Part shown: piece by piece, positions 26,368 to 62,161 of the stretch | Layout of the letters: each line of letters opens with the position of its first letter | Numbering within the stretch: the first letter of the stretch is position 1 | Source of the DNA: Phallusia mammillata | Taxonomy: Eukaryota | Assembly: GCA_965637545.1 (NCBI GenBank) | Contig: OZ281494.1 | Coordinates: forward strand, 16,058,001 to 16,122,000 | Direction of reading: 5' to 3' | Length of the DNA: 64,000 nt | Position numbers and translations under genes: made by a program | The notes under the pieces: generated by a model | The model's database searches: none | What the model saw: only the letters and a program-made list of their open reading frames with translations | Told to the model about the DNA's origin: nothing

Positions 26368-27598
26368 ATGCTTCAATGGACAACGACTTTAATTTTAAGT
26401 AAGGAAAATTCATTGCATAAGATGTTCATTTTTTCATCATGTATAAGATGTTCATTTTTCGGTTGTTTTTTAAGTCATGGCCCTAATGCAAGAAAGCGAT
26501 GGAGAAACTTGTCAGGTACATTTAAATGGATCACATGGATCTTTTTTGTACTCTGGAAACTCTTCTCAAATATGCACTTGGGTGTTTGGAAGTGAAACTT
26601 TGCGAAGTAATGTTATTTGTATCTCTTCAGTTTCAGTCTTTTATTGGCAAAGATGACTTCAACGTCAAGTTGCCAGACGGTAAGAGTTTTATTTACACCA
26701 AAATTTGAGGTTACAGATATATTCCACCTAAACGTTATTCCCAGCTCAATTATTTACAATTTTGGATCCTTAATTTAGATACCGATCTTAAAATTGCATC
26801 ATACAACACTTCGACATTCCCGGGACCTTGGTGTGGCCTTTATGTAAAAAAACAAAAAGGAAACGAAGTTAGTTGTCAGCCTGAAGTGGTGTTTGACAAC
26901 AAAATATGCAAAAACGAATCAATCACTAAAGAAAGTGTAAGTTGGCCTCCAAGGATGTACACAAGATTCCCGAAACAGGTTTTGGTGATAAGTTATGCAA
27001 TTTTGGATTGCCCAAACCATAGACTCCACCCATTCAGCACAACGCCAACGACAACAGGTGAGTATGTTTAATTGTAGAGAAGGAAAATAAGTCAAACTTG
27101 CAAAAGCAGCTCCTTACGAAAAATCTTTATGTTTCTGGCTGACAACAGAAATAATAATCAAAACACTATGTTTAAATTGAAACGTATTATTGCAGGTTCT
27201 TTTAAGCAAACCACAAAACAATATTCTTCTACCGAAAGAGATTTCTTTGACAAAAACGGAAAAACAATATTTGTTGTTGCAACAACATCGTTTGGTATTT
27301 TATTGCTGGTCGCTTTTTCAGTGGTTTTCTTGCTGTTAAAAAGAAACGCGTAAGTGTTTTTAAGTTGTGAATGAATTTTAAACATCCAATAATAAGGAAT
27401 TCAACACACAAAAAAGTCCACCAATTACTTTAACACTCTGTTTACATTTTGTTTGAGACAGGGTCGTTCTAAACTAGTTATTTTTCCACACGCAGGGCAC
27501 TGAAGCGCAAAGCGGTATTTTCGACACAAAGATCACAAATCTATGGTTTGGACACAGTGCACTACCATGCTTATTCATTGGCTGAGTCACAAAGATAA
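26368..27598 (+). pseudogene. B1: CUB-like type I membrane receptor, tail class IYGL..HYHAYSL; +1 frameshift in exon 2
   Basis: Exons 26368-26398, 26475-26679, 26779-27057, 27196-27349, 27496-27598. Signal MLQWTTTLILIMALMQESDG; TM IFVVATTSFGILLLVAFSVVFLLL; tail KRNAALKRKAVFSTQRSQIYGLDTVHYHAYSLAESQR*. gttatttgtatctcttcag has one extra base versus gttattctgtctcttcag in paralogs. Confidence 0.8.
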
Positions 27599-28689
27599 GC
27601 GTAATCTGTTTATATCAAAATAGGCTTTGTGGGTACTAAGCCTCTCGATATTTGTTGTTTTAACACGAATAATGAAAATATAGTTTGACAACACTACAAT
27701 GTAACGAAATAAATCCGCGGTTAATCTATCGTTGTATATTTCTTTTTTTTCCTTGTGGACTATTGTCCTCTAACGCTAAGGTTGCTGTGTATCCAACGTT
27801 TACTTTGTACATTTGTCGACCTGTCTTATACGCGCGCTTCTTTATTGCACTCTTCACACAGTATTGTATGATGTGCTTAACAACCTAACTTATATGTTGA
27901 TGAGGGGGTACGCAGATTGTTTTTTTGTGTTTTTTTTGTTTGATTGTACACCATCACTGTTTTTTTGTAGTTTCTGTTTTTTATTGATCATTTTTTTGTT
28001 TGATGAATTATTTACGCACTTAAAATATTCCATAGTTTCCAAGGTTTGTTTCAAACAAAGTAACTTTATTATGACGGTTGTATTTCTATTTATGTCACAC
28101 TCTTTACTTGTATTCAACATTGTTTTCACTTTGTATTAATAAATTTATCATTACACGCACACTTTTTCTCTTTAACATTATTTATGTTTGTATTTGGGTT
28201 TCATTCACTGGGACTCGCGAAGACCTTTCATAAACAATAAAATTGTAAAATGCATTCATTGACTAAAAAAACAGAGTTAAGAGTTTATTTCAATGATTAT
28301 AAAAAAATTGGAAATGTTATGAAGGGGGTGGCAAGTTACATTTCATTGCTAAAATGGCCACGGTATGAAAAAAGTTAAAAACCACTGGTTTAAAGCTACC
28401 GAATAAAAAAGTAGGACACAGATGCAATATTGCAACTTTAAACATGCGTTGGGTTAAAAGCACAACGAGGTTTTTATTTTGACACAAAGATGTTATTCAA
28501 ACGTCAATGCCAAGTGCTTACCTACTTTAAAGTGATCTTGATGGAGTATAGTTTTACCATCACACAACGAATGGCCCATTACTAATGGGCTAATGGGCCA
28601 TTAGAGTAAGATGTAGGATTAATTCGCTTTAAGTTGTTGACCATTTGCATTAAATTTACTATGAAAGTACGCTAATCATTTATGCCATG

Positions 28690-30690
28690 TTATGCATTGT
28701 TGGGAATTGGTCTCACGTTCATGTAAGTTGGATCTTCACTATTCGATGTCTTTCTTCCAGCTCTGCATATTTTTGAGTTAAAAATCTGAAAGTAGTCAAT
28801 GACATAAAAGACTTACCTCAGTTTAATGATCAGGGAGAAAATGACAACGAGAGCCAACAAAAGTCCAGTGCCCAACACTACTGCCACAATCGTCAAAATA
28901 TTTGTATTTGCAGCTGATTCTGTTCCAGTCGTTGTGGCTGTAAAAGACATAAGGTCAAGCACAGAAAAACATCTCAATAGTATAACCTACATTGTGTCCA
29001 AACATCATCCAATATAACCTCCCATTGATAGGGTGAAAAGTAGTAATGCACCGAACCTAACCGAACCCGCCTCAAAAAGGTTCGGACCGAAACCGAATAC
29101 AGTAAACTTTGGGTAATCCGGAACCGATTGGACCGGAAAATTATCCCGATTAGGCGAACACCAATGTCTTTTTTTCAGGCTTACGTTATCTAGGCAGTGG
29201 TTGATCGGTACAATCACCTTAATTGCGATCAACTTCCCTATAATGACAAAAATAATTGCGTTGGTATGTTGGTATTGAGTGCCTGAAAAGCATTGGGCAA
29301 AATTTTGTGCACTTGACTGTTCGTTCATACGCGGGGTTTCAATAGCGTTCAAATAACAAGTAGCTAACAGGAAGCAGTTATTATAAACTACAACGTCACT
29401 GCAACATGGTTTGTTATACAAATCTGCAATCGTAACGGAAAAAGTCCGGATGAAAATTTTATCCTGAATTTAGCGGTATCCGGATTAACCACAGTGTTGA
29501 GTAAACAAAGGTAATACAAACCATTTGTCCCTCAAGTTTTGCTCGAATTAGGCAAAGATCAGATTCCGGTTTAATCGACGTTTACTGTATTTGGCCATGA
29601 TGTCAACTAATTTGGGCCGAATAAAGCCAAACCTAAAATACCTCTTTTTGTTACATGTTTTCAACTGAAGTTTGTGTTGTTGATGCAGGCGAACTTATCA
29701 CATTCCAAAACAAAACACCTACTAATTGCAGACAACGTGGCTCGTGTTTTATAATGCAACAACTACATGATGTTTCAGATTGGCGATCATCAAGGTTTAT
29801 CTGTATTAATTTAACACATTAAAAGGGGGGTCTGTTCCGCCTATCAAAAGTTTCAAAAAAGGAAAGGAATCGAAGCAGCGTCGAAACGGAATATTCGGCA
29901 GATGTTTCGGCAAACCGAAACTTCGGTGCATCACCAAATGAAAGCAGCAGCTATCTTCTGTTGTAGCAAAAACTACTCATCTCCTTTGGCTTTTCCAAAA
30001 AGACATACGCACCTGTGGTTGTTGGCGTTGTGCTGAATGGGTAGAGTCTAAGGTTTGGGCAATCCAAAATTGCATAACTTATCATCGAAACCTGTTTCGG
30101 GAATCTTGTGTACATCCTTGGAGGCCAACTTACAGTTTCTTTGGTGATTGGTTCGTTTTTGCATATTTTGTTGTCAAAGTCCACTTCAGGCTGACAAACA
30201 ACTTCGTTTCTTTTTTGTTTTTTAACATAAAGGCCACACCAAGGTCCCGGATGTGTCGAATTGTTGTCTGATGCAATTTTAAGATCTGTGTCTAAAACAA
30301 GGGTCTAAAATTGTAAATAATTGAGCTGCGAATAACGTTTAGGTGAAATATATCTGTAACCTCAAATTTTGGTGTAAATAAAACTCTTACCGTCTGGTAA
30401 CTTGACGTTGAAGTCATCTTTGCCAATAAAAGACAGGAACTGAAGAGACAGAATGACATTACTTCGCAAAGTTTCACTTCCAAACACCCAAGTGCATATT
30501 TGAGAAGAGTTGCCAGAGTGCAAGAAAGATCCATGTGTTCCATTTAAATGTACCTGACAAGTTTCTCCATCGCTTTCTTGCATTAGGGCCATGACTTAAA
30601 CAACCACCGAAAAAATGAACATTTGCTCAATCCTATACATTGCACTGAATTTTCCTTACTTAAAATTAAAGTCGTTGTTCATTGAAGCAT
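28690..30690 (-). pseudogene. B2: CUB-like type I membrane receptor, tail class EDPTYMNV; nonsense at codon 4 (TGG>TGA)
   Basis: Exon 1 reads ATG CTT CAA TGA. The remaining exons are open: ETCQVHLNGTHGSF..WCG..WPPRMY..DCP; TM ILTIVAVVLGTGLLLALVVIFSLII; tail KLRAGRKTSNSEDPTYMNVRPIPNNA*. Confidence 0.78.
29041..29936. mobile_element. Old hAT-like non-autonomous element forming most of B2 intron 3 (homologous sequence in B3 intron 3)
   Basis: TIR-like ends tagtaatgcaccgaa / rc tggtgatgcaccgaa (13/15); subterminal CCGAA/AACCG motifs; TSD is poorly preserved. Confidence 0.45.
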
Positions 30691-31204
30691 CTTGATGTCT
30701 TTAATGGAAATGAACCACAAACTTGTCAGCTCAATCGAATTAAAGTATGCCTCTCTTATGTGTCATATCTATCTGTCTATTTCATTTGCGGTGATATTCT
30801 GACAATCAATCTGTATTTGGGCATCTGAACTCTTTACTTTGTTCACAAGGCTTCTTTACGTAGTAAGAATTTGAATGAAATTTGAATACCGGAAACTCTG
30901 ATGCAGTCAATGAGAAGGGATAAATGTGGACGATGGAGGTGACAAAACAAGGTTGCCAAATGATTATTGTTGAGTTCACTGTGCTTAAAATGAGATTGAA
31001 ATGAGAAAAAAATGTATTAAATTAAAAAGTAAGAAACTAATGTATATTGTATATAATAACACGAAATTTAATACTAGCAACCTATTTTTATTTCTCACAT
31101 ACTTTCACGGTGATTTATCGACACTATATTTTTGTGTAATCCAAAAAGCATAATATTTCAAAAATGGTTCCTAAAGCTCCACAAGTATATGGAAGGGTAT
31201 AAAG

Positions 31205-32977: not shown

Positions 32978-34324
32978 CTAGCCAAGCGAGCAAACAACAC
33001 AACGGATCTCCCAACCAGAAACATAAGGTTTGCAAGGAACACTATAACCACATTTGTTTTCCACAACAAATAAATAAGCTCCGTGTTGGCTTCCTTTGGT
33101 TCCTGGAACCACTTGTGGTGTGTCGTCCACACAAAGATGACTGGACGAATGCTTGGTCGTGTCGTGGGATCCAGTCATTATGTAACCTGTGTATTCGATC
33201 GTCCAACCTTCGGGACACGTTTCGCGGCTTGGAATCATTAGCTGGAAAATTTAAAAAATAATTATAACTTTGCTTTGTTGCTGAATTTTTTTCTGCATGG
33301 AAGTCACGAAGCACTAGAGAGTCACAAGAACCCGATTTTGGACAAACGTCCAAATATAGATTTACAACATCGCTAATACCACGTTACCTGTGTTGGACCT
33401 TGAACCAAGCAAATAGCGCATGGAACACCTTGATATTGAAGTGCTTGCTCCTCGATGAAAGACAAATCGAACAAAGGGTATTTACTCGGTCCGTCTCGAT
33501 ACTCAGCTCCATAAATATAAGAAGGCCCTGTTTGTGATGTACAGTGTGTTAAATGCTTTATTTAGTAACTAACAAATCCGTTTCTGTGCAAAAAGATGGA
33601 ATATTTAATGACCCTGAGTGCCGTCCACGTCACGTTGTGATGTAAGCACAAAAAATCTGATCCACCTCCAAGATGCGCGTAATACGATCCGGCAACATAA
33701 CCTGGATAAACATATTTTAGGAGTACCAGGCACAACTAAGACGGATATCAGCCACATACCGTGGTACACCATACTTGTTCCAGTCTTGACTGGGCAGTCA
33801 CTTCTTCCCCAACGTACGTAAGTAGTATCTAATTTGATTTGTGATTGGTTAGATTTGCAATACCGCCTACCTATCTGGATTTTTCCTGTTTATTAGCAGC
33901 ATGCGATCAAGAGAGACTAAGAAAAAATAATTTACCTATCCCGTAAGTTGTTATCACTGGAGAATCTTCTTCCTATAAGAAAAGCGAGAAGCAAAAATTA
34001 GAGTAAAAGTTTATGTGATACAAATTTTCTGCGTACCAATGATCTTTTATGAACAATGTGTTGCAAATGAATTTCCTTGACTCCAGATTCTTTTTCAGCC
34101 ACCAAGTTTTCTAAACTGCAAATTTGCAATTGCACATTAGGAAAGTGAGTCCCAAGGAGCATATGAGTTTAAATTATTCAATCAACTGACCGTTTTAGGT
34201 AAATGGTAACCTGATGTACAACATTTCCAACGCAGAATAATGCCACCAAAAGCAAAAATGTTCCAAAAATCAGTGGTTTGTTTGAAATCTTACGAACAGA
34301 ATTTCTGTAGCTTTGCGGTCGCAT
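32978..34324 (-). pseudogene. A3: family-A gene with a 19-bp frameshifting deletion in exon 5
   Basis: All 7 exons are present. Exon 5 reads aacgtgacgtggacggcactcagg versus aacgtgacgtataccgaaggacactatgtggacggcactcagg in A2 (19 nt lost). Exon 2 also has an in-frame deletion. Confidence 0.78.
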
Positions 34325-36091: not shown

Positions 36092-38479
36092 ATGATTCAA
36101 TGGACAACTATCATAAGTTCAAGTAAGTGAAATTCATTACAGTGCATAAGACTGAGCTTATTTTCATTTTTTCGGTTGTTGTTTAAGTCATGGTTAGGGC
36201 TGTTATCAAATAAATTATTATTTGATTATTTGAATTTATTAAATACTTGGAAATTTATCAAATCTTTTTTACACAATTTCAAACAGTCAAATGATGTTTT
36301 CGGTGCAGAAAACCTGAATATAAGTGCAAAATCATTTTAATTAAACACATTTGTGGGTATGAATTTGAGAATTAACAGCAGCATGTGTTTTCAGCCATAA
36401 ATACACATTTCCCAAAAAATTTTGGGCAAAAAAGCATAGTAATTTAGTCCACATTTCGGTATCAATTACACTCAGTAGCAATTAAGGTTATTCAAGCAAG
36501 TGATTAAAATGTTAAAGACCATAGTTCATTTAACCAAGTGTTCAATAGAAAGGTATTAACAAAGTGAAAAAATACACATTCACACATGGTTTTTACGGAG
36601 AATAAGATTTAATGACTAATAGCACAGCCACATTACAATTTTTGGTTAATGACTTTAAAATATACTTGTTAATAACGGCTCTGTGCCGTACAGAAATTCA
36701 GGAATTTAAAATTATTTGAATTTTTTGTTTGTTTGATTTGAAAGCTAAAAAACTACTGATCATTTGAAAATTTCAAAACATTTATTTGATAACAGCCCTA
36801 GTCATGGTCCTAATGAAAGAAAGCGGTGGGGCTAAAATTTGCCAGGTACATTTAAATGGAACACATGGATCTTTTTTTTACCATGGAAACTCTTCTCAAA
36901 TATGCACTTGGGTGTTTGGAAGTGAAACTTTTCGAAGTAATGTCATACTATCTGTTCAGTTTCTGTCTTTTATTGGCAAAGATGACTTCAACGTCAAGTT
37001 ACCAGACGGTAAGCGTTTTATTTACATTAAACTTTGGCGTTACAGATTTATCTTACCTAAACATTATTCGCAGTTAATTTCTTTACATTTTTACAACCTT
37101 GTTTTAGACACCGATCTTAAAATTGCGTCAGACAACAATTTGACACATCCCGGAGCTTGGTGTGGTCTCTATGTTAAAAAACAAAGAGAAAACGAAGTTA
37201 CTTGTCAGCCTGAAGTGGACTTTGACAACAAAATATGCAAAAACGAACCAATCACTAAAGAAAGTGTAAGTTGGCCTCCAAGGATGTACACAAGATTCCC
37301 GAAACACGTTGTGGTGATAAGTTATGCACTGATGGATTGCCCAAACCATAGACTCTACCCAGTCAGCACAACGCCAACAGGTGAGTATGCTATTGTAAGG
37401 AATCCAAAGAATTAATTTTTGCTTCAACAGAAGATAGCTGGTGTTTTTAAGTTTGGTTTGCCGAAACGTTTCGACCGAATATTTCGTTTCGACGCTGTTT
37501 CGATTTTAGTCCTATTTTTGAAAAAACAGGCAAAAGCAACCTATTTTTGTTTGTTAAAATAATACTAATAAACCTTCATTATCGCCGATTTAAAACATTA
37601 TGTAGTTGTTGCATTTGAAAACACGATCCACGTTGTCTGCAATTATGTGTTTTGTTTAAACTTACGTATTAAAGAACTGTTTTGCAATGTCATTAATAAG
37701 TTCACCTGCATCAACAACAACAAACTTCAGTTGAAAACATCTTTTAGAAAAGGATATTTTAGGTTTGGCTTTATTCGGCCCAAATAAGTTTACAGCATGG
37801 CAAAATACAGTAAACGTCGGTTAAACCGGAATTGGATCTTTGCCTAATTCGAGCAAAATTTGAGGGATAAATGGTTTGTATTACCATTCTTCACCAAACA
37901 CTTCGATTAATGCGAATATTCGCTAAATTCAGGAAAAAATACGCTTTCTTTATTTCCTAATCCGGATTCATTACGTTGCAATTTCGGATTTCTGCACCAA
38001 ACCATGCTGCGGTAACGTACTGGTAGTTTATAATAACTGCTCCCTGTTAGTTACTTGTTGCTCTGTAAAACATAGATTATGCCATTACAGTGTTGTGGTT
38101 TCTGTGCTTTACCTTAAGCTTTTTTATAGCCACAACGGCTGAAACAACAACCACAACGGCTGGGACAATAGCCACGACGGCTGGGACAATAGCCACGACG
38201 GCTGAAACAATAGTCACAACGAATGGATCAGAATCATATGCAAGTACACAAATTTTAACGGTTATAGCGGTGCTGCTTAGCACTGGACTTTTGTTGGCTC
38301 TCGTTGTCATTTTCTCCCTAATCATTAAACTGAGGTGAGTCTTACATGTCATTGACTATAATTGCCGATTTTAATTAAAAATATGCAGAACTGGGAGGAA
38401 GACATCGAATAGTGAAGATCCAACTTACATGAACTTGGGACCAATTCCCAACCATGCAGAACTTAACGCAAACAATTAG
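36092..38479 (+). CDS. B3: CUB-like type I membrane receptor with Thr-rich repeat stalk and EDPTYMNL tail; apparently intact
   Basis: Exons 36092-36122, 36802-37008, 37108-37380, 38130-38334, 38389-38479. Signal MIQWTTIISSIMVLMKESGG; TM ILTVIAVLLSTGLLLALVVIFSLII; tail KLRTGRKTSNSEDPTYMNLGPIPNHAELNANN*. Intactness depends on use of the AG regenerated at 36800-36801. Confidence 0.75.
36195..36800. mobile_element. Young hAT MITE (606 bp) inserted at the B3 exon-2 splice acceptor
   Basis: Perfect 21-bp TIR TAGGGCTGTTATCAAATAAAT; perfect 8-bp TSD gtcatggt (36187-36194 and 36801-36808). Confidence 0.95.
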
Positions 38480-40574
38480 CGTACTTTCACAGTAAACATA
38501 ACGCAAATGGTCAACAACTTGATGCGAAATATTTCTCCATCTTACACTGATAGACAATTTTGTTGTGTTGTGGCAAAACTATACTCCACCACAATTACTT
38601 TTAAAGCAGGTAAGAACCTGGCTTTGACGTTTGATATCATGTTAGTGTCGAAATAAAAATACTCGTTGTACTTTTGTCCAACCGCATGTTAAATTTTGCT
38701 TATTGATGTGTACTTTTTATTCCGTATGTTGAAAAGTGTTAGTGAAAAGTTATCGTTGCAAATATTTGTTGTTGACCACGTCGGTAGGTGAAAATTTTTA
38801 TCCCTTGCTGTCCATTACAAACGGTCACATTTCATTTTAAAGGGTGGTCTCACTTTAAAATCGCTAACTTTGTAATGTCCAGGCTTAGTAATTGTTTATT
38901 GACAATGAGGTGATGGGATAGGCTTAGTGATTGTTTTAATGCTATTATGTCGCTATGTTCACTAAGCGAAATACACTCATCCCATCATCTCATTGTCAAT
39001 GTAACAGAAAATAGTTAGGTAAACCCGCATTCGGTCTAGGATTTCAGGGAAAGGGGAATCGGTTGACTTTATCTTACCAATTGAAAGGTCTCTTATCCAA
39101 CCCTAAGCTCACTTATACCCGGATCAATACCCTTAACTTGGTACGTCTCATCCATGGCCTTAACGGTAAACCGACCTGGTAAATACCAGATTCCCCTGCA
39201 CGGCTTGCCACCAAAATCAAAGTTAGATGGTCACACAGAAAAGGACTTCAGCTAAAAAAAGTTTAATAAAATATACTTATGCGAATAAGCAAAGCAACTT
39301 CCAAAGCTAAACATGACACAACACAACACAACACCACACTACCAAGTTTTCAAACAGTTCGAACAATACGAATTTCCAAGAGAGAACTGTCTGAAATCTA
39401 GAACGGAGCAAGGTAGCAAGGCAACGTCAAAATAATTGGTGCGAACGGTAAATCAAATGTAGCGGTACTGAAAACGAAACCCAAATATCAATATACGTTG
39501 TGTTAAACGAGACAAAGTGTGCGTGTAATGATAAATTACATAATATAAGGTGAAAACAATGTTAAAAATAAAAAAGAGTGTGTGGGACACTAATAGAAAT
39601 ATACCGGTAAAATTAAAGTTACTTATAAACAAACCTAAGGCACGAAATATTATGCGTGAATAATCAAAGTAAATAGATTTGATTCATGAAAAGCGTAAAC
39701 CTATGTAAAAAGAAAACTAAATTAAAAATACAGCGATGGTGTACAATCAAACAAAGAAAAAGCAATTCGCTCATTACGGAATATATATCATCACATGGTT
39801 ATGCACAATGTAAGTTATGATACAACGTGAAAAGTACAGTAACAACATTGCGCAAAAAGGTCGCAAAAATACAAAGCAAACGTGGAATGCAAAGCCCTGC
39901 AACAATAGAGAACAATAGCCCAAAAGAAGAAAACAAACAACGATAGATTAACTTTATTTGGTCATATAGTAGTGTTCTTAAACTTTATTTTCATTTGCCA
40001 TTTTAAAACATCAAATATTGAGAGGCCCAGTATCCAAGCCTGTGAAACCTGTTTTGATACGAACACATAAAAAGAACACTTATCTTCGTGACTCAGCTAG
40101 TGAATAAGCCTGGTAGTGCAGTTCTTTCACTGTGTCCAACCCATATATTTGAGATGTTTGTGTCGAAAATGCCGCTTTGCGATTCAATGCCCTGCTCGTG
40201 TTCAAACATACAAATTCAGAACAAGCCTCCCTCAAACAAAATGTAAACAGTGCTAAACGTATTGGTAGACTTGTTGGAACCCTTATTATTGGTCGTTTAA
40301 ACTTGATTCAGAATGTAAATAACTTACGCATTTCTTTTTAACAGCAAGCCAACAACCGAAACAGCTGCCAGCAACAAGAGACCAAAAGATGTTGTTGCAA
40401 TAACAAATATTGTTTTTCCATTTTCCTCAAAAAAATTTCTATCAGTAGAAGAATCCTCTGATTGATTCAAACAACCTGCAGAATGCAAAAACTTCGTTTT
40501 AAATTAAACCTCCGAAAATTCAAATTACCATAATCAGACAAACAATTTTCTGTTTAGATAAATATATACTGTTG

Positions 40575-41205
40575 CTGTCAGACATAATGTATCAACAAAA
40601 TTTCAGCTCTTCCGGCAGTTTTTATTCTAATATGCCAACATTTCGATGTCCCATACGAAACACCTTCATCAGGGTAATGACATAAATTGCAAACACAAGT
40701 ATTTATAAAGCGAAAAGGGCGGCGAAACACACACACAAAAAAGGGGCGGTGATAAAAAAACGCAGTGCGCACCAATGGTCGAGTGATAACACCTAGCTCA
40801 ATGGTGCAAAAGCGACCGATGAGTTATCGGCATTAGAACGTCCGTTTTAACGTTCATCGTGTTGGTGTGGGAATGTATGTTCCACGACTCCTGGAAACCT
40901 CGCTTGTGAAAGTCGGTTTCTCTCGCTAACACCTGGGCGGCAGAAAAGTTTATGGTGTGATTGAGGACAGTAGCATGTTGTGCTAATGCCGACTTTTTGG
41001 CATCTTTTTCGGCTACATCCCTTTCAAGTTCTTTGCGGCGCGTATTGAAAGATCTTTCCGTTTCGCCAATGTAAATCTCGTTGCACTGTTCACATGGGAT
41101 CGCATACACCGCACCCCTTGCCGCGTTTCTGTTTAGATGTTTAGGTGTTTTTTTTGTGAAGTTACCGCCAAAAGCAAGTTTCATGCAGTTGAAAGCAGGA
41201 GGCGT
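40575..41205 (-). mobile_element. 5'-truncated Penelope-like retroelement: GIY-YIG endonuclease ORF plus 3' region
   Basis: ORF 41184-40798: GAVYAIPCEQCNEIYIGETERSFNTRRKE..SALAQH..HTINF..QVLARE..KRGFQESWNI is a typical PLE GIY-YIG C-terminus. Boundaries are estimated from loss of homology to paralogous introns. Confidence 0.88.
40625..40685 (-). ncRNA. Degenerate minimal hammerhead-ribozyme motif in the Penelope 3' region
   Basis: Minus strand: CTGATGA-A-GGTGTTTC-GTAT-GGGACATC-GAAA-TGTT. Core boxes plus an 8-bp stem II (with G-U pairs); the ACGT palindrome is altered to ATGT; stem I is imperfect. Confidence 0.55.
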
Positions 41206-42065
41206 TTTTGTTGTAGCAAATGCTTAACCCCTTTTGCTTTCCTAATTTTATACGCACCTGGGGCTGCAAGCGTTGGCCTGACTGTGTGACGTCAACGTTG
41301 TGGGCAATCCAAAATTGCATAACTTATCACCACAATGTGTTTCGGGAATCTTGTGTACATCCTTGGAGGCCAACTTACACTTTCTTTAATAATTGGTTTG
41401 TTTTTGCATATTTTGTTGTCAAAGTCCACTCCAGGCTGACAAGTAACTTCGTTTCCTTTTTGTGTTTTTACATAAAGACCACACCAAGGTCCCGGATGTG
41501 TCGAATTGTTGTCTGATGCAATTTTAAGATCTGTCTAAAACAAGGGTATAAAATTGTAAATAATTGAGCTGCGAATAACGGTTAGGTGAAATATATCTGT
41601 AACCTCAAATTTTGGTGTAAATAAAACTCTTACTGTCTGGCAACTTGACGTTGAAGTCATCTTTGCCAATAAAAGACAGGAACTGAAGAGACAGAATAAC
41701 ATTACTTCGCAAAGTTTCACTTCCAAACACCCAAGTGCATATTTGAGAAGAGATTCCAGAGTACAAAAAAGATCCATGTGTTCCATTTAAATGTACTGGA
41801 CAAGTTTCAGCTCCACCTCTTACTTGCATTCGGACCATGATTTAAACAAGAACCGAAAAAATGAACATTTGCTTAGTCTTATACATTGCAATGATTTTTC
41901 CTTACCTAAAATGACCGTTGTCCGTTTAAGCATCTTGATGTCTTAGTAGAAATAAGCCACAAACTTGTCAGCTCAATCGAATAAAAGTATGCCTCCCTTA
42001 TTTGTCATCTCTGTCTGTCTATTTAATTTGCGGTAATATTCTGACAATCAATCTGTATTTAGGTA

Positions 42066-42646: not shown

Positions 42647-43783
42647 TATCTGAATTTTTACACTGTTCACAAGGCTTCTTTGCGTAATATGAATTTAAAT
42701 GAAATTTAAATAACGGAAACTCTGATGAAGTCAATGAGAAGGGATAAATGTGGACGGAGGAGGTGAAAAAATTAGGTTGTCAGATCGTTATTAATAAGGT
42801 CACTGTGCTTAAAATGAGAAGAAAAACAAAAATTGAATTAAATTGTAAAGTAAGAAACTTCTGTATGTCGTATATAACAACACGAAATTAAAAACAAGCA
42901 AACCTTTTTATTTCTGACATACTTTCACGGTGATGCTATGTTTTTATGTAATCCAAAAAGCATAATATTTCAAAAATGGTTCCTCAAGTTCCACAAGTAT
43001 ATGGACGGGAAGGGAATGGAGTAATAGTTTTTCAATGAACGCGTAGTAGATTAGCAGTGATCGAAAATGGCACTGCGTTGTTTTCTGCTATTTTCTGTTT
43101 TTGCATGGGCTCTGCTTGCAATTTAAAAACGTCAGAAATGGCTACGTAGTGTGTTAAAGTAAAACTGAAAAAAACAGTCAGAAAATGCAGGTAACACAAT
43201 AAATTGGTAAAAGTAGATTGACAAAGATGCCCCAGGATTCAAAATTTTTGAACAAGCAAAATGGCATTTTGTATATTTTACATAGTACTTTTACTTTATG
43301 GTTTTCACTTTCACTAACGTAATTTTCTGTGTGAATGTGTTCACCCGATCCCTCTACTTGTATACAAACTGTCGAATTTTGGGTAATAGGCTTTTATGCT
43401 GTCGTATTATACTACATGGTAGGGACCTACGCGCTTTAAGCGACATGGTAGCCTATGCTGTATGGATATTACGAAGCTTTTGGGGTTACCCATTGTTTTG
43501 TTTTCGTCGGTTGCGGCTGTTAGATGACAAATTAAATAAGCTGAACTGAACCTCTCAGTGCGGTAGAAAGTTGGAAGTTTGATCACTGGCTTCAATTTAT
43601 TGTTTTTTTGCTAAATATCAGGGGTAATTTAACTTTTAGTTTTTTTTGTAAGAAATAGAAAACAATGTAAAACAAGAAAGGCATATCACATTGCTTTTTG
43701 TTCAACCCTTATTTAACATCCTGACTCTTGGTGGCAATTGTAGTAGCAGTTAAACAAGAAGCCAAACCTGGGATATTATAAAA

Positions 43784-43980
43784 CAGGGGTCGGCAACCTT
43801 TTTTCTACTGTCACCGTTTTTAAAATTGAAATTTTATCGGGAACCGGCCTTCAAAATACTACAAATATTTAGCAACGAAACGCCTGAATTAGTTTATCAT
43901 CTCCGGGATACATTAGCAAAATGTTTTTAAAAATGTACCCTGAAAAATTATACTGCCCGGTAAGCGGTTGCCGATCACTG
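43784..43980. mobile_element. Short hAT MITE (197 bp)
   Basis: Ends CAGGGGTCGGCAACC / GGTTGCCGATCACTG; TSD ttataaaa/ttataaga. Confidence 0.8.
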
Positions 43981-44308
43981 TTATAAGAGGCACTTGCAGT
44001 TTAATGAAGCAAATGGGACTTCAAAACACTACAACATTCTGATCAAATGATTTCATTCAACGTGTTTGAGCTTGATTAAGATTCTTTTGTTTTCATAAAT
44101 AGTCATGTTTCTATGTTTAAAATGAAAAAACGTTGCAACACATTTACAAACATATACATGTTATCTGTAGCATGCAAATGACTGAAAAACAAAGCTTAAC
44201 ATTATACTCTTTTTTGACGTAATGGCTTGTTTTGGAAAAATAATTATCATTGTAATTGCATTGGAACGTATTTGAAACTTTGACCTAGGAAAGTCACTTG
44301 AGTATTAA

Positions 44309-45698
44309 CTAGCCAAACGAGCAAACAACACAACGAATCTCCCAACCGTTAACATACGGTTCACAAGGAACACTGTAACCGCATTGGTTTTCCACAACAA
44401 ATAAATAAGCTCCATGTTGACTTCCTTTGGTTCCTGGAACCACTTGTGGTGTGTCGTCCACACAAAGATGAATGGACGAATGTTTGGTCGTGTCGTAGGA
44501 TCCAGTCATAATGTATCCTGTGTATTCGATCGTCCAACCTTCGGGACATATTTCACGGCTTGGAATCATTAGCTGGAGAATTCATAAAAATCATAACTTT
44601 GCTTTATTGGTGAATTTTTTTCTGCAAGTCACGAAGCACTAATAATCCAGAGTCACATAAGAACCTGATTTTGAGCCCAGGTTTCAGATGTTGACTTACA
44701 ACATCGCTAATAGCACGTTACCTGTGTCGGACTTTGAACCAAGCAAATAGCACATGGTACACCTTGATATTGAAGTGCTTGCTCCTCGATGAAAGACAAA
44801 TCGAACAAAGCGTATTTACTTGGTCCGTCTCGATACTCAGCTCCGTAAATATAAGAAGCCCCTGTTAGTGATATACAGTGTGTTAAATGTCATATTTAGG
44901 AACCAATAAAAGTTTTCCAGTGCAAAATGATGAAATATTAACTGACCCTGAGTGCCGTCCACATAATGTCATTCGGTATACGTCACATTATAATGTAAGG
45001 ACAAAAAATCTGATCCGCCTCCAATATGGGAATCATATGATCCCGCAGCATAACCTGGATAATCATATTTTAGTAGCACCATCCCCATCTAAGATGGAAG
45101 CCATTTACCGTGGTACACCATACTTGTTCCAGTCTTGACTGGGCAGTCACTTCTTCCCCAACGTACGTAAGTAGTAGGCTACCTATTTTGATTTGTAATT
45201 GGTTAGATTTGCAATACTGCCTACGTATCTGGACTTTCTGTTTATTAGCAGCATACGATCAAGAGAGACTAAGAAAACAAATAGTTTACCTATCCCGTAA
45301 GTTGTTATCACTGGCGAATCTTCTTCCTGTAAGCAAAGCGAGAAGCATACAATTACAGTAAAAGTTTCTGTGGTGCAAATTTTGCACGTACCAATGATCT
45401 TTTATGAACAATGTGATGCAAATGTTGCCAGTTTTGACCTTGAACTTTCTTGACTCAGATTCTTTTTCTGCCCTCAAGTTTTCTAAACTACAAATTTGCA
45501 ATTGCACATTAGGAAAGTGAGTCCCAAGGAGCATATAAGTTGAAATTATTTTTTATCAACTGACCGTTTTAGGTAAATGGTAACCTGATGGACAAAACTT
45601 CCGACGCAGAATAATTCCACCAAAAGCAGAACTGTTCCAAAAATAAGTGGTTTGTTTGAAACCTTACGAACAAAATTTCTGTAGCTTTGCGGTCGCAT
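44309..45698 (-). pseudogene. A4: family-A gene with a 1-nt frameshift in exon 2
   Basis: Seven exons are present. gaatctgagtcaag versus gaatctggagtcaag in A1/A3 shifts the frame and gives a stop in exon 3; also Glu in the TM segment. A single-base loss could be an assembly error. Confidence 0.65.
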
Positions 45699-45774
45699 CT
45701 TTCTCATCAGGGCACTCAACAGAATGAAATAAAACTTGTGATAGAACTGGCATGTGAAGTCTCAGATTTGTGAT

Positions 45775-48855: not shown

Positions 48856-50126
48856 TTATCTTTGTGACTCGGCCAATGAATAAGCATGGTAGTGCAACTG
48901 TTCCACTGTGTCCAACCCATATATTTGAGATCTTTGTATCGAAAATACTGCTTTGCGCTTCTGTGCCCTATGTGTGGGAAAATAACTAGTTTAAAACGAC
49001 CCTGCATCAAACAAAATGTAAACAGAGTGTTAAAGTATTTGGTGGGATTTTGTGTGTGTTGAATCCCTTATTATTAGATGTTTAAATTGGATTTACAACA
49101 CAAAAATACTTACGCGTTTCTTTTTAACAGCAAGAAAATCATTGAAAAAGCGGCCAGCAATAAAATACCAAATGATGTTGTTGCAACAACAAATATTGTT
49201 TTTCCATTTTCGTCAAAGAAATCTCTATCGGTAGAAGAAACTTTCTTTGAAGTGGATTGCCTCGAAAAATCTGCAATTGAAACCTTCCGATTTCGCTTAT
49301 TTGAGCAAACCATTTTCTGATTGAGTGTTTTGATTATTATTTCTGTTGTCAGTCAGAAACATAACGATGGTTCGTAAGGAGTAACGATGGTTCGTAAGAA
49401 GTTTGACTTATTTTCCTTTTCTACAATTAAACATACTCACCTGTTGTCGTTGGCGTTGTGCTGACTGGGTTGAGACTATGGTTTGGGCAATCCAACAGTG
49501 CGTAACTTATCACCACAACGTGTTTCGGGAATCTTGTGTACATCCTTGGAGGCCAACTTACACTTTCTTTAATAATTGGTTTGTTTTTGCATATTTTGTT
49601 GTCAAAGTCCACTTCAGGCTGACAAGCAATTTCGTTTCCTTTTTGCTTTTTTACATAAAGACCACACCAAGGTCCCGGATGTGTCGAATTGTTGTCTAAT
49701 GCAATTTTCAGATCGGTGTCTAAAACAAGGTTGTAAAAATGTAAAGAAATTAGCTGTGAATAATGTTTAGGTAAGATATATCTGTAACCCCAAATTTTGG
49801 TGTAAATAAAACGCTCACCGTCTGGCAACTTGACGTTGAAGTCATTTTTGCCAATAAAAGACAGGAACTGAAGAGACAGAATAACATTACTTCGCAAAGT
49901 TTCACTTCCAAACACCCAAGTGCATATTCGAGAAGAGTTTCCAGAGTACAAAAAAGATCCGTGTGTTCCATTCAAATGCACCTGACACGTTTCAGCTCCC
50001 AAGCTTTCTTTCATCAAGACCATGACTTAACAATATAAAAAAATGAATAAATTCTCAGTCTTGTACACAATGTACAGTATAATGAATTTGCTCACTTGAA
50101 ATGAAGATGGTTGTCCATTGAATCAT
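48856..50126 (-). CDS. B5: CUB-like type I membrane receptor, tail class IYGL..HYHAYSL; apparently intact
   Basis: Signal MIQWTTIFISIMVLMKESLG; ectodomain ORF 50023-49427; TM IFVVATTSFGILLLAAFSMIFLLL; tail KRNAAQKRKAVFSIQRSQIYGLDTVEQLHYHAYSLAESQR*; all splice sites GT-AG with paralog-matching phases. Confidence 0.8.
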
Positions 50127-51012: not shown

Positions 51013-52296
51013 ATGCTTCATCTTACATCTTCAACATGGATTATAGGTCAACTCGTGATTTCAGGTGAGTGTATATTGCAGTGTATATAAGACTCAGAAT
51101 TTGTTTCATTTTGACTGTTATAGGCATTATCAAAGGAGAAGTTCAATCCAATAGTTGCCCAGTACATTTGAATACAACACATGGATCCTTAATGTACACT
51201 GCAAACTCATCAGAAATATGCAGCTTCATATTCGGAAATAAAAATGTGCGAAGTGATGTTATCCTATCTCTTCAGATTCCCTCGTTCATAGGCAATGTTG
51301 ATAAATTCTACGTCCATTTGCCAGATGGTGGGTTGCATCAAGTTTGTTGATTTTTGCTTTGACGTTTCTTGCAAAAACGTTTTGCTAGCTCCAAGTTTTA
51401 AGTAATATTAGAGAAATCACTTTAAAAACTAGGTACCTGTTTTGCTACTCATTAATATTTTTTCCGTCGTTGTTTTTAGATCATGTTCTTAAAACCGTAT
51501 CAGGCAACACAACTCCTGCGGACTTTTGGTGTGGTCTTTACGTAAAAAGTCGAAACAGAAACGAAGTTACTTGTCAACCTGGAATAATGTACGATAACGG
51601 GATATGCGAAAACAAACCAATTACTTCAGAAAGTACAAACTGGCCGCCGCGGATGTACACGAGCTTTCCAAAAAGTGTCGTGGTGATAAGTTACGCGTTC
51701 CTGGAGTGCCCGACTCACAAATGTAATACTTTATATTAATTAAACAAAGTTTCAAACCAAAAAAAGAACCAGTGTGTCAATGTAAATGTATTGAATGCAT
51801 ATAACCATGAAGTAATATACTGTTTTAATTTTGCCTGTTTAACTATACAAAAACTATATGTCTTATATTTAACGCTAAGCTGTCCTTTATGATAAAAATA
51901 TTATAAACAAAAGTTTCTATTATATTTTAAATTTTTTTGCAAACATTTTTTTGCAGTAACTACAAAAATTGCAAGCGACTCAGCTGCAAATACAAACGCT
52001 TCCAGGGCCGTAGCAGTTGTATTTGGTATTTTCTTTTTGCTAGCCCTGATTGTTATTTTCGCCCTTGTCACTAAAGTCAGGTAAGCCTTTTTGACTCTTT
52101 TAAATTCATTAGTATTTGCCTTTTTTACACAATAATATGCAGAAAGGAAAAGAACTCGAACATTGAGGATCCAGTGTATGTGAACATGCGACCTATTCCC
52201 AACAATCATCAGTGTGAAACTTCAAACGCAACAGAACCATCAGCACACTCTCCATTATCTGTGCAACAACAAGATACCTCCTGTCAACTTACGTAA
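51013..52296 (+). CDS. C1: divergent CUB-like type I membrane receptor with EDPVYVNM tail; apparently intact
   Basis: MLHLTSSTWIIGQLVISGIIKG; SCPVHLNTTHGSLMY..ICSF..FWCGLYV..TCQP..ICEN..WPPRMY..ECP; TM AVAVVFGIFFLLALIVIFALV; tail TKVRKEKNSNIEDPVYVNMRPIP..CQLT*. The 3' end could extend if cttac|gtaag is a donor. Confidence 0.78.
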
Positions 52297-54422: not shown

Positions 54423-55936
54423 ATGTACAAGTGGATCGCAATGTTTCTGGTTGGTAAGGCAACTTATTTTATAACATAAGTGTAATTAAACGGAGCATAC
54501 TAATTTCATAGTTTCAGGTGTGACCCAACAAAGAGTTTTTGCCAGATGTCCAACTGGTATCAATCAATCTCACGGTGTCGTGTATTACACCAGCAGATAT
54601 ACGCTTAGTAAATACAGCAGATATATGCTTAATGAAAAATGTAATTGGATTTTCATGATGGGCGCCAACCTAAAAAGCGATGTTATGCTCTCTGTTCAGT
54701 TTCTCCATTTTTACACCTACATGCTGGGTTACGTCTCGTTACCAAATAGTAAGTAAAAATTCATAGGAAACTGAATGTTTCGTCTCAATGAAATTTAAAA
54801 ATATGTGTCATGTTTTTTACAATGGCCATTATGTTTCGTAGACCAAAGTATGAACACTAGCTACATATCTTCAAGTGACGACCCATGGTGTGGAGTTTAC
54901 GTGAAGCAAAATGACTTAAACGAAACAACCTGTCGAGCTGGAATTAAGTTAATAGGAAAATGTCAAAATCAACCCGAGACAGCAGTCAGTAGATATTGGC
55001 CTCCTCGCATGACAACAACAAGAGTGTGGAAAATCACTGTTTCTTATGGAGTTTTGGAATGTCCACAAGCTAGTAAAATTTATCCACCCATGACAACAGG
55101 TCGGCATAAAAAATGACTACACACTCCTCAGTTAGTTAGGTTGCTTTTATTTTGTATAGTTCACTATGACTGCTATTTTTGATATTGTTTCTCGTGAAAA
55201 AGCTTTTTACAGCAAAAAGGAAAAAAATCGACCTTAGATATATTTACAGAAGCTTCACTCACCACAAACCGGTTAGCATCTACATCAGGAACAAGCACCA
55301 GCATTGATCAATGCCAGGAGTCACACATGGCAACAATTGTGGCAATTACACTTGGTGTTTTCCTGGTTATGGCACTAATTGTCATTTATGTTCTTTTTCG
55401 CAAAACCAGGTATGTATAATTGTGGTGGTAAAGAGTAAACGTAACAATTGGCGTCTTTCTATTTAGCGGCCAAAAGATTCGCATAACCCCTATATACTTT
55501 ATTAAACCAAATATACTAAACAAAAAGTACCCGGAGAGCAAGCAAATTAGATGCATGAAAAGTAACAATTTAGACAGGTTTTACTACTGAAAGTAACCTC
55601 GCATAATATTGCTTTTTGATACATAGCCACTAAAACGCTGCCGACAGTCACGTACACGTTCGTCACAGTTATGCCAAAAAACGGTCGTTTTGACGAACAC
55701 TAGCTGTTCTCACTTGTTATGGACTCAGGCTTAAAGCTTGTTTATTCTAGTTTTGTGGTGACCAATCGCATATTAAGTTATATAACACGATTTCCCCATG
55801 TAAACGTTTTCATAGGACAAGAAAACCAAACATCGATACAATATATGCTGAGGTTGCAGCCGTCGCAAACAGGCCACAGAGTAATGAAGTGATTAACAAC
55901 GAGATTTATGTTTCCGCCGAAGCGGTTGGGCTATAG
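54423..55936 (+). CDS. D: most divergent CUB-like type I membrane receptor, with ITSM (TIYAEV) tail; apparently intact
   Basis: MYKWIAMFLVGVTQQRVFA; RCPTGINQSHG..KCNWIF..PWCGVYV..TCRA..KCQN..YWPPRM..ECP; TM IVAITLGVFLVMALIVIYVLF; last exon 55816-55936 RTRKPNIDTIYAEVAAVANRPQSNEVINNEIYVSAEAVGL*. Same 5-exon phase pattern as B and C. Confidence 0.78.
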
Positions 55937-58900: not shown

Positions 58901-60989
58901 GTGAAAGTAGCTCAGATAATAAATAGGACGTTCCAGGTAAAGTTAGGCACGAATCACGTTCGTTATATTGAAACTCAAGTCCGAACCCGGTAGGAATTTA
59001 AACCCGCCCCACAAGTACGAGGCACTACTGTTGGCCGTCAAACGCTCGTTTTTGAGAACACTTTTTATGTTAACAATTTTCGATTATCGTGTTTCTTTTA
59101 AATCTTAATTTTTTCTGAGATATTGATTCAAAATCTTTTGCACTCGATAAAGCATTTAGGTAAAACTGCAAATTCGCTCTCAGGTAATGTTGTTCTTTTT
59201 GTTATGGCGTCGTTTGCCTACCCAGCCTTTCTGCAATGTTGTACAGCTAAGTGTCAGACAAAACATTTTTTTAAATAAACATGCGCATGCAAAGTTGGAT
59301 CTGCATAAACAAGGAAGTAAAAATAATGTGTTGGTCCTTATCCACTGATAACATTTAAACACACTCGCCAATTGACAACCATCTGACTTTTTAACAGAGT
59401 TCTCGATATTTGCGATATATAGTGCTTTTGATTAAAGCCAGGTCTTATTATATGAACAAGAACCTCTGGCGCTGTTAACATTCAGCAAGTTGTTTGAAAT
59501 ATGAACATAAAAAGATTTAGGCATACGCCAACCAATACGGTGTTGAAATAACACTTTCATTAAAGAAAAACTAACAATAAATTTTAAAAAAGAAAAAAAC
59601 TAAACAGTCAGGTGTTTTCTGCAAATTGAGATTTAGTGTTAATATGTTAAAATTATAGGAAGAATAGGAAGAAAACCAATGCGTTGATTAAAATTGTCAC
59701 GAGGAATTTTCTTTAATTTTTGTAACTCAAAATTGTAAAATGAACAAACTGTTAGCAAATCATTGATTGTTTTTATTGTATCATAGGAATTGGTTTCATT
59801 TGCGGGTAGCGATTCGAACTTACCCTCGAAAATTCAATTTCGGCCCAAAAAGAGGCGTTTGATACACTATTACTTAATTGTTTGTCGCATTCCCATAACT
59901 TGCAGCTTTCGACGTATCAAATACCATGTGGACATTGTTGGACTGATGTAAATATAAATTTCAGTGCATTTGAAAACGATCTCCGATGTATAAAGGATCT
60001 CCAAAACACACTCAGAGTTGCCACCAACTAAAGCAATAGCATGTAAAATAGCATTTGGACGAAATTGGTTACAATATAAAGTGTATTAGGTAAGCGACAG
60101 GCCGTGCACACTGTTTCGATCCATAAGTTCTCATCCCTGCTGCCGGTGACAATACGTTGGTCGTTTGGACAAGTGTAATCGAGGCGTTGGATAACAAAAA
60201 AGCAACCGGGAGGATATTCAGTTGAAACACACAGTTCAGTGACAAGGGATATTGGACATATCTTAAATACAAGCAAATTAGGTGTAACGTTTACTTAACA
60301 ACGACTACTTCCAACATGGAACTTCATTCGACGTACATTCACCTTAAACATCATATTTTTGATTAGGGAGGGAAATTTAAAATTAACAAGCTGTTGAATA
60401 AAAAAGTTTCTGAAACAGTGTCTGGAGTCCTTGCTATACATATTTTCACTCATTGAGCTTAAACTAATTCTGCACGCTGTTTGTTGGAAATAGGATCACC
60501 CGTAAACCTCAATAATCAACTCGTATTTGTTAAATCAGGCTTGTTGGCTTGCATTTTGCTTGTGCTGAAAGTTTTTGAATTTACCGTGAACAGCGACGTT
60601 TTGTCAAAAACATATTGAAAAAGAATAATTACAGAGTTTAGGAATTACCATCTAGACTTTTAAACCTTTGAAACACACAAAACCGCGTTAGCTTATTGGT
60701 TTACAATACCCCTTGTGTGACTTGAGAGCTTTTCGCCTACGCGCATGTGATTTCCGTCATTCAAATTTGTACACAATATAAGCGACGGCAATATCTCATG
60801 GGAAGTTTAAAAGTTCAGGCAAAAAACGTAATTAAAAATTGAATACAAATAAGTTAATGTAAGATTGCGTTAATTGCATGGGCATTTGGGGAAAATATAG
60901 CAAACCAAAACTAGGAATTGATTTGTTGACCTCATTTGCTAATTGTTTGTGTTTTTTAGTATGCTTTTTAATATCAACCTAAACATATT

Positions 60990-62161
60990 ATGCTTTATCT
61001 TAAATCTTTAGCATGGATTATAGGTCAACTTTTGATTACAGGTAAGTGTATAGCTGTGTATAAGACTCTGAATTTGTTACATTTTGGCTGTTTTAAATCA
61101 TAGGTCTTTTAAAATGAGCCGTTCGAGCTGAAAGTTGCCCAGTACATTTGAATACAACACATGGATCCTTAATGTACACTGCAAACTCATCACAAATATG
61201 CATCTTCATATTCGGAAATAAAAATATGCGAAGTGATGTTATCCTATCTCTTCAGATTCCCTCGTTCATAGGCGATGTTGATAACTTCTACGCCCATTAG
61301 CCAGACGGTGGGTTTGTCAGTCTTTTTTTGTATTTTCTTGCAGAAACATTTTGCTAGCTCCAAGTTTTTAATAATATTAGAGAAATCACTTTATAATGTG
61401 GTTTGCTTTTTTTGCTACTCTTAAGTATTTTTTCCATCGTTGTATTCAGATCATGTTCTTAAAACCGCACCATGCCTGCAGGCAACACAACTCCTGCGGA
61501 CTTTTGATGTGGTCTTTACGTAAAAAGTCGAAACAGAAACGAAGTTACTTGTCAACCTGGAATAATGTATGATAACGGGATATGCGAAAACAAACCAAGT
61601 ACTTCAGAAAGTTCAAACTGGCCGCCGCGGATGTACACGAGCTTTCCAAAAAGTGTCGTGGTGATAAGTTACGCGTTCCTGGAGTGCCCGACCCACAAAT
61701 GTAATACTTTATATTTGTTAAACAAAGTTTCAAGCTGTCCTCTATGATAAAAATATTATGAACAAAAGTTTCTATTAGTTTCTGTTATTAGTTTTACTTT
61801 TTTGCAAACATTTTTTTGCAGTAACTACAAAAATTGCAAGCGAATCAGCTGCAAATACAAACGCTTCCACGGCTGTAGCAGTTGTATTTGGTATTTTCTT
61901 TTTGTTAGCTCTGATTGTTATTTTCGCCCTTGTCACTAAAGTCAGGTAAGCCGTTTTGGCTCTTTTAAATTCATTAGTACTTGCCTGTTTTACACAATAA
62001 TATGCAGAAAAGAAAAGAACTCGAACATTGAGGATCCAGTGTACGTGAACATGCGACCTATTCCCAACAATCATCAGTGTGAAACTTTAAACGCAGCAGA
62101 ACCATCAGCACACTCTCCATTATCTGTGCAACAACAAGATACCTCCTGTCAACTTACGTAA
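60990..62161 (+). pseudogene. C2: duplicate of C1 with at least three in-frame stops
   Basis: Colinear with C1; AAA GGA>AAA TGA, CAT TTG>CAT TAG and TGG>TGA in the WCG motif; TM and EDPVYVNM tail exons are still open. Confidence 0.85.

Follow-up and report, generated by a model that had tools for sequence, protein, structure and literature searches.

We analysed a 64,000-nucleotide stretch of the genome of the ascidian Phallusia mammillata (contig OZ281494.1 of assembly GCA_965637545.1, positions 16,058,001 to 16,122,000; called the window here, with coordinates counted from its first nucleotide), whose base composition is that of AT-rich animal DNA (32-41% GC). Positions 26368-62161 carry eight copies of one gene family, arranged in the order B1(+), B2(-), B3(+), B4(-), B5(-), C1(+), D(+) and C2(+). 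A motif scan found WPPRM eight times in the window, and tblastn with each tail exon, as well as exons 2 and 3, as query returned exactly eight copies, with one tail module per copy. Three-frame reading and alignment indicated that the encoded product is a type I membrane protein and that a five-exon gene plan is common to all copies. Exon 1 contributes 28-31 coding nucleotides, exon 2 the rest of the signal peptide along with the first two cysteines, and exon 3 a WCG motif, three more cysteines and WPPRM; exon 4 encodes a Thr/Ser-rich stalk and a single transmembrane (TM) helix, and exon 5 the cytoplasmic tail. Splice junctions were GT-AG throughout, save for the exon 2 acceptors lost in B4 and C2, with intron phases of 1,1,1,2 for D as well as the B genes and of 2,1,1,2 for C (C1). 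Six cysteine columns, WCG and WPPRM were invariant in the exon 2 and exon 3 alignments, as a preliminary description of this locus had reported. That description had also listed eight five-exon genes; the number of copies was correct, but four of them (B1, B2, B4 and C2) are disabled as assembled and B3 is interrupted by a miniature inverted-repeat transposable element (MITE), which leaves B5, C1 and D as the only cleanly intact copies.

The copies fall into three tail classes, termed N, Y and D and described below. B1 (26368..27598, + strand; exons 26368-26398, 26475-26679, 26779-27057, 27196-27349 and 27496-27598) has a Y tail and is a pseudogene as assembled, with a +1 frameshift in exon 2 near 26615, at a site that is not a homopolymer. 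B2 (28690..30690, - strand; exons 30690-30660, 30594-30391, 30291-30013, 28937-28817 and 28762-28690) has the N tail EDPTYMNV; codon 4, in exon 1, reads TGA instead of TGG, and the remainder is open. Every exon reading frame is open in B3 (36092..38479, + strand; exons 36092-36122, 36796-37008, 37108-37380, 38130-38334 and 38389-38479), which has the N tail EDPTYMNL. Its stalk exon contains, at 38130-38220, an expanded Thr-rich repeat, TTAETTTTTAGTIATTAGTIATTAETIVTT, that is not found in B2, a mucin-like variation in length beside the membrane. B4 (40080..41933, - strand; exons 41933-41906, ~41822-41634, 41530-41258, 40475-40328 and 40191-40080) is a Y-tail pseudogene in which the exon 2 acceptor was lost by a change of AAG to AAA and an in-frame stop lies near the end of exon 3. 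B5 (48856..50126, - strand; exons 50126-50096, 50025-49819, 49719-49441, 49270-49114 and 48967-48856) is intact and has the Y tail IYGLDTVEQLHYHAYSL. Also intact are C1 (51036..52296, + strand; exons 51036-51064, 51098-51327, 51480-51722, 51957-52080 and 52143-~52296), whose N tail EDPVYVNM includes a YxNM motif, and D (54423..55936, + strand; exons 54423-54453, 54518-54748, 54842-55099, 55250-55409 and 55816-55936), the most divergent copy. C2 (61013..62161, + strand) is an N-tail pseudogene with tail exons 95-96% identical to those of C1 in protein; near 61500 the tryptophan codon of WCG has become TGA, exon 3 contains an indel, and the acceptor of exon 2 is lost.

The ectodomains of the B genes are very similar across tail classes. 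B2 and B5 share 77 of 92 exon 3 residues, with 11 differences within the first 80, exactly as described earlier, and the exon 2 and exon 3 peptides of the other B genes are 83-91% identical to those of B5 in both the N and the Y class. Ectodomains of B and C genes are 51-59% identical, with synonymous divergence (dS) of about 1. The D ectodomain is 30-40% identical to the others with saturated dS, and D is the oldest and most divergent paralogue in the cluster. Intron 2 (99 nt) is stop-free and in frame in B3 (36796-37380) and B5 (49441-50025), and exons 2-3 of these copies therefore read through as open reading frames (ORFs) of 209 and 198 aa, respectively. Gene callers that rely on ORFs would consequently report 33 spurious residues midway through the domain.

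The sequences of exon 5 divided the copies into the classes given in the preliminary description, with the same gene assignment. The N-type exon, (S/N)x(E)EDPxYxN(V/L/M)xPIPN, is present in B2, B3, C1 and C2, and the Y-type exon, SQIYGLDTV(xxL)HY(H/Q)AYSLAE, in B1, B4 and B5. The D-type exon encodes TIYAEV (55841-55855), followed by NEIYVSA with a second tyrosine 21 residues on; as a pattern match, TIYAEV fits the immunoreceptor tyrosine-based switch motif (ITSM), TxYxx[VI]. No high-scoring segment pair was obtained by blastn between the N-class and Y-class TM and tail exons, BLASTP comparison of the exon 4 peptides gave E = 49, that is, no homology, and Smith-Waterman alignment of the exon 5 peptides gave z < 1. 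The N and Y modules of B2 and B5 thus cannot be aligned, as had been stated. The claim of three unrelated modules did not survive, because exon 4 of D is homologous to that of the N class (BLASTP E = 3e-8, 39% identity over 38 aa; tblastn agrees). As judged by these alignments there are two types of TM exon, not three, and D departs from the N class only at exon 5 and through ordinary deep divergence; its last exon has diverged or been replaced. The TM helices of all three types lack K, R, D and E, and neither the inhibitory (ITIM, [ILVS]xYxx[ILV]) nor the activation type (ITAM) of immunoreceptor tyrosine-based motif was found in any B or C tail. We also considered the two tails as alternative 3' exons of one gene, and this was ruled out: each 5' module is followed, on the strand that carries it, by exactly one tail module, and every tail exon belongs to such a copy.

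Between B genes of different tail class, homologous DNA begins ~270 nt 5' of the ATG and ends 10-40 nt into intron 3. Sequence common to all B genes stops at 27067-27100 in B1 (+ strand; within 27058..27100), and the corresponding breakpoints in early intron 3 are at 30003-29973 in B2, 37397-37420 in B3 and 49422-49400 in B5. Within a tail class, homology extends past intron 3 through both 3' exons and into the 3' flank, so that B5 and B1 are contiguous over 1575 nt and B3 and B2 align through intron 3 and the tail exons. The 5' modules are 80-92% identical in DNA between N and Y classes, the highest value, 92% over 970 bp, being that of B1 (Y) with B2 (N), which are inverted and convergent; same-class 3' modules are only 72-83% identical, which is below the identity of the B1 and B2 5' modules.

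Informative sites paired B1 with B2 and B3 with B5, and the maximum-likelihood tree of the 5' module joined B1 (Y) to B2 (N) with support of 96/95. Monophyly of the Y class was rejected by the approximately unbiased test (p = 0.0011, log-likelihood difference of 29), so that the conflict between the ectodomain tree and tail class is significant. With segment limits set after inspection of the data, B2 appeared as a mosaic, closest to B1 at 26240-26600 and 26900-27060 and to B4 at 26600-26900, the B4-like stretch starting in the last part of exon 2 and reaching into early exon 3. Since the ectodomain tree conflicts with tail class, these comparisons show that tails have been exchanged, or ectodomains homogenised across tail classes, by recombination or gene conversion. 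Such cross-class homogenisation of ectodomains is the structural hallmark of paired receptors.

Intron 3 of B4 begins with about 67 nt of N-type sequence, followed by a retroelement fragment and then the Y-type exons, a layout that suggests a second, separate N/Y junction. C1 and C2, which are the outgroup to the B genes for the ectodomain, carry N-type exons 4-5 at ~69% DNA identity. The N-type TM exon is common to D, C and the N-class B genes and is therefore ancestral in the cluster, together with the N tail for the clade of B and C, and it is the Y module that was brought into the B lineage.

We looked for relatives of the family in other organisms. Searches were run exon by exon, and the only contiguous two-exon queries were the in-frame read-through ORFs of B3 and B5. 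An exhaustive profile search, using an alignment of these two ORFs and single exons of the other copies, gave 12 matches: two low-complexity repeats (P0006 and P0009), which were discarded, the named but uncharacterised ascidian proteins XP_076815627 (Clavelina lepadiformis), CAB3263081 (Phallusia mammillata) and XP_002123649 (Ciona intestinalis), with profile E values of 1.5e-13 to 2e-4, and seven unnamed fragments of metagenome, ENA or Logan contigs, at least one of these contigs carrying tandem copies in an ascidian-like array. Relatives in this search were thus confined to ascidians, namely Clavelina, Phallusia, Ciona and ascidian-like metagenome contigs. A word-index protein search with the B3 read-through ORF returned nothing; the same search with the Clavelina homologue P0001 or the family alignment recovered the known Clavelina and Phallusia proteins and one short Clavelina-like fragment, Thr-rich words having swamped the candidates. 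Literature searches yielded no account of this family. Homologues from Clavelina, Phallusia and Ciona share with the window genes the cysteine pattern, WCG and WPP, the position of intron 2, a Thr-rich stalk, a single TM helix and tails with tyrosine motifs. They differ in having 22-33% identity to the window proteins and tails of other sequence and length, and no function has been described for any of them.

In Clavelina lepadiformis OX392444.1 (14.71-14.73 Mb), at least six members form a tandem array on one strand, inside a huge gene call on the opposite strand. C-termini vary between neighbours in this array, which includes VLYQPI, VIYQPL and ILYQPV (ITIM pattern), TEYSEI (ITSM pattern) and a Y-type tail. 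Mixed tyrosine tails on one ectodomain family are therefore a trait of the family. The tail of Clavelina P0001 ends in NMYQGD..GYHNMAL, with Y-x2-D, a second Y ten residues after the first and then H, which is the spacing of the window Y tail. Homology of the two tails was rejected, since BLASTP gave no alignment, and the likeness is kept as a resemblance of pattern. Three tandem copies of the family are present on one of the metagenome contigs (ENA/JGI, 55-58 kb, 41% GC), which are presumably ascidian host DNA in a microbiome sample. A tail on these contigs, PLSFENKTFEDG..DHYHNLDE, bears a clear resemblance to the Y-type tail of Clavelina.

The preliminary description had proposed that the ectodomain is CUB-like, and this was borne out at the level of the fold but not of the sequence profile. 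Pfam searches at E <= 10 gave no real match for the window exons, the read-through ORF or the Clavelina, Phallusia and Ciona homologues, the weak ones reflecting the composition of the stalk and TM segments; profiles built from the alignments of exons 2 and 3 retrieved nothing from the PDB. A match to DCN1 in the PDB sequence search was spurious, as it lay inside intron-derived residues. AlphaFold (AF2) modelling of the B5 read-through ORF, with its 33 intron-coded residues and an alignment of 10 rows, was useless (predicted local distance difference test score, pLDDT, of 28). Modelling of residues 22-172 of Clavelina P0001 with the family alignment produced a confident all-beta model with pLDDT 80 and a predicted template modelling score of 0.78. 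In an exhaustive structural search with this model, 19 of the 20 top chains were CUB domains (Z 7.3-8.5, root-mean-square deviation 2.3-3.2 A over 93-102 residues), with matches to Gpr126, neuropilin, PCPE-1, cubilin, TSG-6, C1s, MASP, Kremen and Neto2, and jelly rolls other than CUB reached Z <= 6.5. Foldseek found nothing significant in the PDB with the same model. The first cysteine pair (C-x20-C-x-W) lines up with C1-C2 of CUB domains, and WCG is similar to the 'fCG' of CUB; there is no counterpart of the usual third CUB cysteine, and three extra cysteines follow. In UniRef, the name 'CUB domain-containing protein' is attached to CAK8680512.1 (UniRef100_A0ABP0FPZ6), which is in the same 90% cluster as XP_076815627. 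On the strength of the homologue model, we read the ectodomain as a divergent CUB-like fold with an extra cysteine-bounded insert.

We think it probable, though well short of certain, that the cluster represents an unnamed, ascidian-specific family of small CUB-like receptors in which a recognition module has been recombined onto alternative docking tails. The predicted protein comprises a signal peptide encoded by exon 1 and the start of exon 2, a six-cysteine CUB-like beta-sandwich of ~155 aa (exons 2-3), a stalk, an uncharged TM helix and a tail of 25-50 aa with tyrosine motifs. The cluster would evolve by birth and death, through tandem and inverted duplication, transposon insertion and the loss of copies, four of the eight being dead. 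Gene conversion or recombination would keep the 5' module, from the promoter to ~40 nt into intron 3, alike in the five B copies, and a foreign 3' module (Y-type exons 4-5) would have been joined to the B 5' module at least once, probably twice, by recombination within intron 3. One ligand-binding domain would thereby be coupled to different predicted docking motifs, YxN or YxNM, the two-tyrosine Y type and, in the older paralogue D, the ITSM-like TIYAEV.

Evidence for constraint came from two comparisons. The core of the N tail, EDPxYxNxxPIPN, is ~74% conserved between B and C genes, whose ectodomains are less alike (51-59%), and at a dS of about 1 this indicates that the tail is under constraint. 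The ratio of non-synonymous to synonymous divergence (dN/dS) of the ectodomain was 0.26 between B3 and B5, the two open B copies, so ectodomain and tail both appear to be constrained. Y-tail exons were open in all three Y copies, including the pseudogenes. These observations bear on the alternative that the tail swap and gene conversion are neutral by-products of rearrangement in a decaying, transposon-rich cluster, and that the chimeric copies never formed a working set. Such an origin would be in keeping with the dead half of the cluster, the interruption of B3 by its MITE and the retroelement at the B4 junction. It accords poorly with B5, which joins a Y tail to a B ectodomain and is fully intact with canonical splice sites and low dN/dS, with the open Y-tail exons and with the conservation of tail motifs over a dS of about 1, and we regard it as quite improbable.

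For the favoured reading of a recombining receptor family, we infer that the tyrosines may be phosphorylated docking sites and that the swap of tails may alter signalling output. A phosphorylated YxN is a site for the Src homology 2 (SH2) domain of Grb2, and YxNM is of the type found in CD28, DAP10 and the immunoglobulin tail tyrosine (ITT) motif, which also binds the p85 subunit of PI3K. YxNM is listed as a CD28/DAP10-type costimulatory class in section 13 of PMC12582321. The motifs of the N-type and D tails also fit YxxPhi sorting signals, and the Y tail fits no known motif. The tyrosines could thus be sorting signals recognised by AP-2, not SH2 docking sites, in endocytic, scavenger or adhesion receptors whose tail classes differ in trafficking. 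YMNL, YMNV, YVNM and YAEV all conform to YxxPhi, the tails are very short (25-50 aa) with the tyrosine ~15-20 residues from the membrane, and endocytic or matrix receptors, such as cubilin and neuropilin, which are among the fold matches, commonly contain CUB domains. However, the conserved flanking sequence EDPxYxNxxPIPN, in which the N at +2 never varies, has a specificity beyond what YxxPhi requires, the Y tail (YGLD, YSLA) does not fit it, and the Clavelina paralogues repeatedly end in ITIM or ITSM patterns. We consider the sorting-signal reading unlikely.

The preliminary description had seen in the cluster the signature of paired receptors. Near-identical ectodomains on non-homologous modules, breakpoints within intron 3 and the conflict between trees are indeed present, but the B and C tails have no ITIM or ITAM, no TM helix contains a charged residue, and half of the copies are pseudogenes. 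Like the vertebrate paired receptors (KIR, LILR, SIRP, Siglec, Ly49 and PILR), the window family is a clustered multigene family with birth and death and pseudogenes; in both, highly similar ectodomains are joined to differing TM and cytoplasmic modules at an intronic boundary and are homogenised through gene conversion or recombination. The vertebrate families, however, use immunoglobulin (Ig) or C-type lectin domains, whereas the window family has a single CUB-like jelly roll. The latter also lacks the combination of an ITIM tail with a charged-TM, adaptor-dependent partner; its tails are YxN(M), an unclassified two-tyrosine type and an ITSM-like type. Since there is no division into ITIM tails and charged TM helices, classical activating and inhibitory pairing is not supported here.

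True pairing of the vertebrate kind would mean that B copies with the same ectodomain deliver opposing signals in immune or allorecognition cells and are kept matched by selection. In addition to the homogenisation across tail classes and the birth-and-death structure of the cluster, the resemblance of YxN and YxNM to CD28/DAP10 costimulatory sites (a class given in PMC12582321) and the ITIM and ITSM patterns in D and the Clavelina paralogues would agree with it. No B or C tail, however, has an ITIM, ITAM or hemi-ITAM (hemITAM), the TM helices contain no charged residue, the Y tail has no recognised motif and the N-tail B copies are broken or interrupted; D, the copy with the ITSM pattern, is not a near-identical partner of any other. 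Pairwise dN/dS of the ectodomain gave no signal of positive selection (0.26-0.7, with values of ~1 only against pseudogenes), and hence none of diversification. Vertebrate-type pairing is, in our judgement, improbable.

Comparison with two further systems helps to place the proposed family of recombining CUB-like receptors. Neuropilins, Neto, Kremen, CDCP1 and DCBLD1/2 are likewise type I proteins with an extracellular CUB-type beta sandwich, and neuropilin, Neto2 and Kremen are among its best fold matches. The tails of CDCP1 and DCBLD carry tyrosine motifs. These CUB receptors are conserved, single-copy, multi-domain proteins that are recognised by Pfam as CUB, in contrast to the window family, which is single-domain, fast-evolving, found only in ascidians, missed by Pfam, endowed with the extra cysteine-bounded insert and organised in large tandem arrays. 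The Fester family (FF) and FcoR of Botryllus schlosseri (PMC12582321) form the nearest tunicate analogue: they are tunicate-specific, clustered and highly variable, undergo intergenic recombination and have tails that switch between tyrosine motifs (ITIM, hemITAM and core YxxI/L/V). Unlike the window family, FF and FcoR have Ig-like and Sushi domains and long tails, and their motifs switch through alleles and alternative splicing (PMC12582321). In the CUB-like family of the window the switch is by genomic recombination between paralogues, and YxNM, present in C1, is absent from FcoR (PMC12582321).

A broader proposal is that ascidians possess a paired or multi-output surveillance system built on a CUB-like domain in place of Ig or lectin domains, in which gene conversion keeps one recognition domain matched across the copies of tandem arrays and recombination in intron 3 adds YxN(M) (costimulatory-type), ITIM/ITSM (inhibitory or switch) or Y tails. 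We put this forward as a speculation that is unlikely to hold. If true, paired-receptor logic would have been invented independently in this chordate lineage, possibly for self/non-self or microbial recognition. Paired and multigene immune-type receptors arise repeatedly, nearly always on Ig or C-type lectin scaffolds; here the scaffold would be CUB-like, in a chordate lineage. The clean breakpoints point to the rewiring of one recognition domain to different tyrosine-motif tails, which would be a new and tractable case of convergence. 'Uncharacterized' proteins of Ciona, Phallusia and Clavelina would gain names and testable motifs, and practical value is limited, half of the copies being dead.

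Several observations weigh against our interpretation. Pfam CUB (PF00431) misses the family at E <= 10, PDB sequence and profile searches were blank, and the assignment to CUB is derived from the model of a distant homologue (~28% identity), not of a window protein, with middling Z scores. The only B copies with N tails are B2, with its stop at codon 4, and B3, with the MITE in exon 2; because both are disabled or interrupted, this haplotype may have no functional B pair. Searches of the protein collections met no transcript-derived protein of this species, the segment boundaries in the mosaic test were picked post hoc, and the window and Clavelina Y tails, which BLASTP did not align, are alike by eye only.

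Two mobile elements lie within the B genes. The MITE of B3 (36195..36799, 605 bp), whose insertion site is a few bases into exon 2, is flanked by copies of a 9-bp target duplication, AGTCATGGT, at 36186 and at 36800; its ends are inverted repeats of ~21 nt that start TAGGGCTGTTATC (TAGGGCTG), and it looks hAT-like. Its end provides an in-frame cryptic AG acceptor at 36795/36796, and B3 would be rescued only if this predicted acceptor is used. Intron 3 of B4 contains an ORF of 128 aa (40798..41184, - strand), which occupies exactly the interval that separates the N-type beginning of the intron from the Y-type exons and is the sole copy in the window. Pfam gave no match for this ORF, in which a GIY-YIG-like motif, AVYAIPCEQCNEIYIGET, can be seen by eye; from this visible motif it resembles the endonuclease portion that terminates a Penelope-like retroelement, here 5'-truncated.

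The cluster is also interspersed with a segmental duplication, in which 31720-34397 matches 43025-45771 (85% identity over 2.7 kb), with further units at 16054-19169 and 21074-24303; the units alternate with B genes. They encode ORFs of 86 aa at 32978-33238 and 44309-44569 (- strand). Single exons of these ORFs had no match in Pfam. The ORFs contain a cysteine-rich CPEGW..YTGY motif, which we presume to resemble collagen IV NC1 or spongin-type domains.

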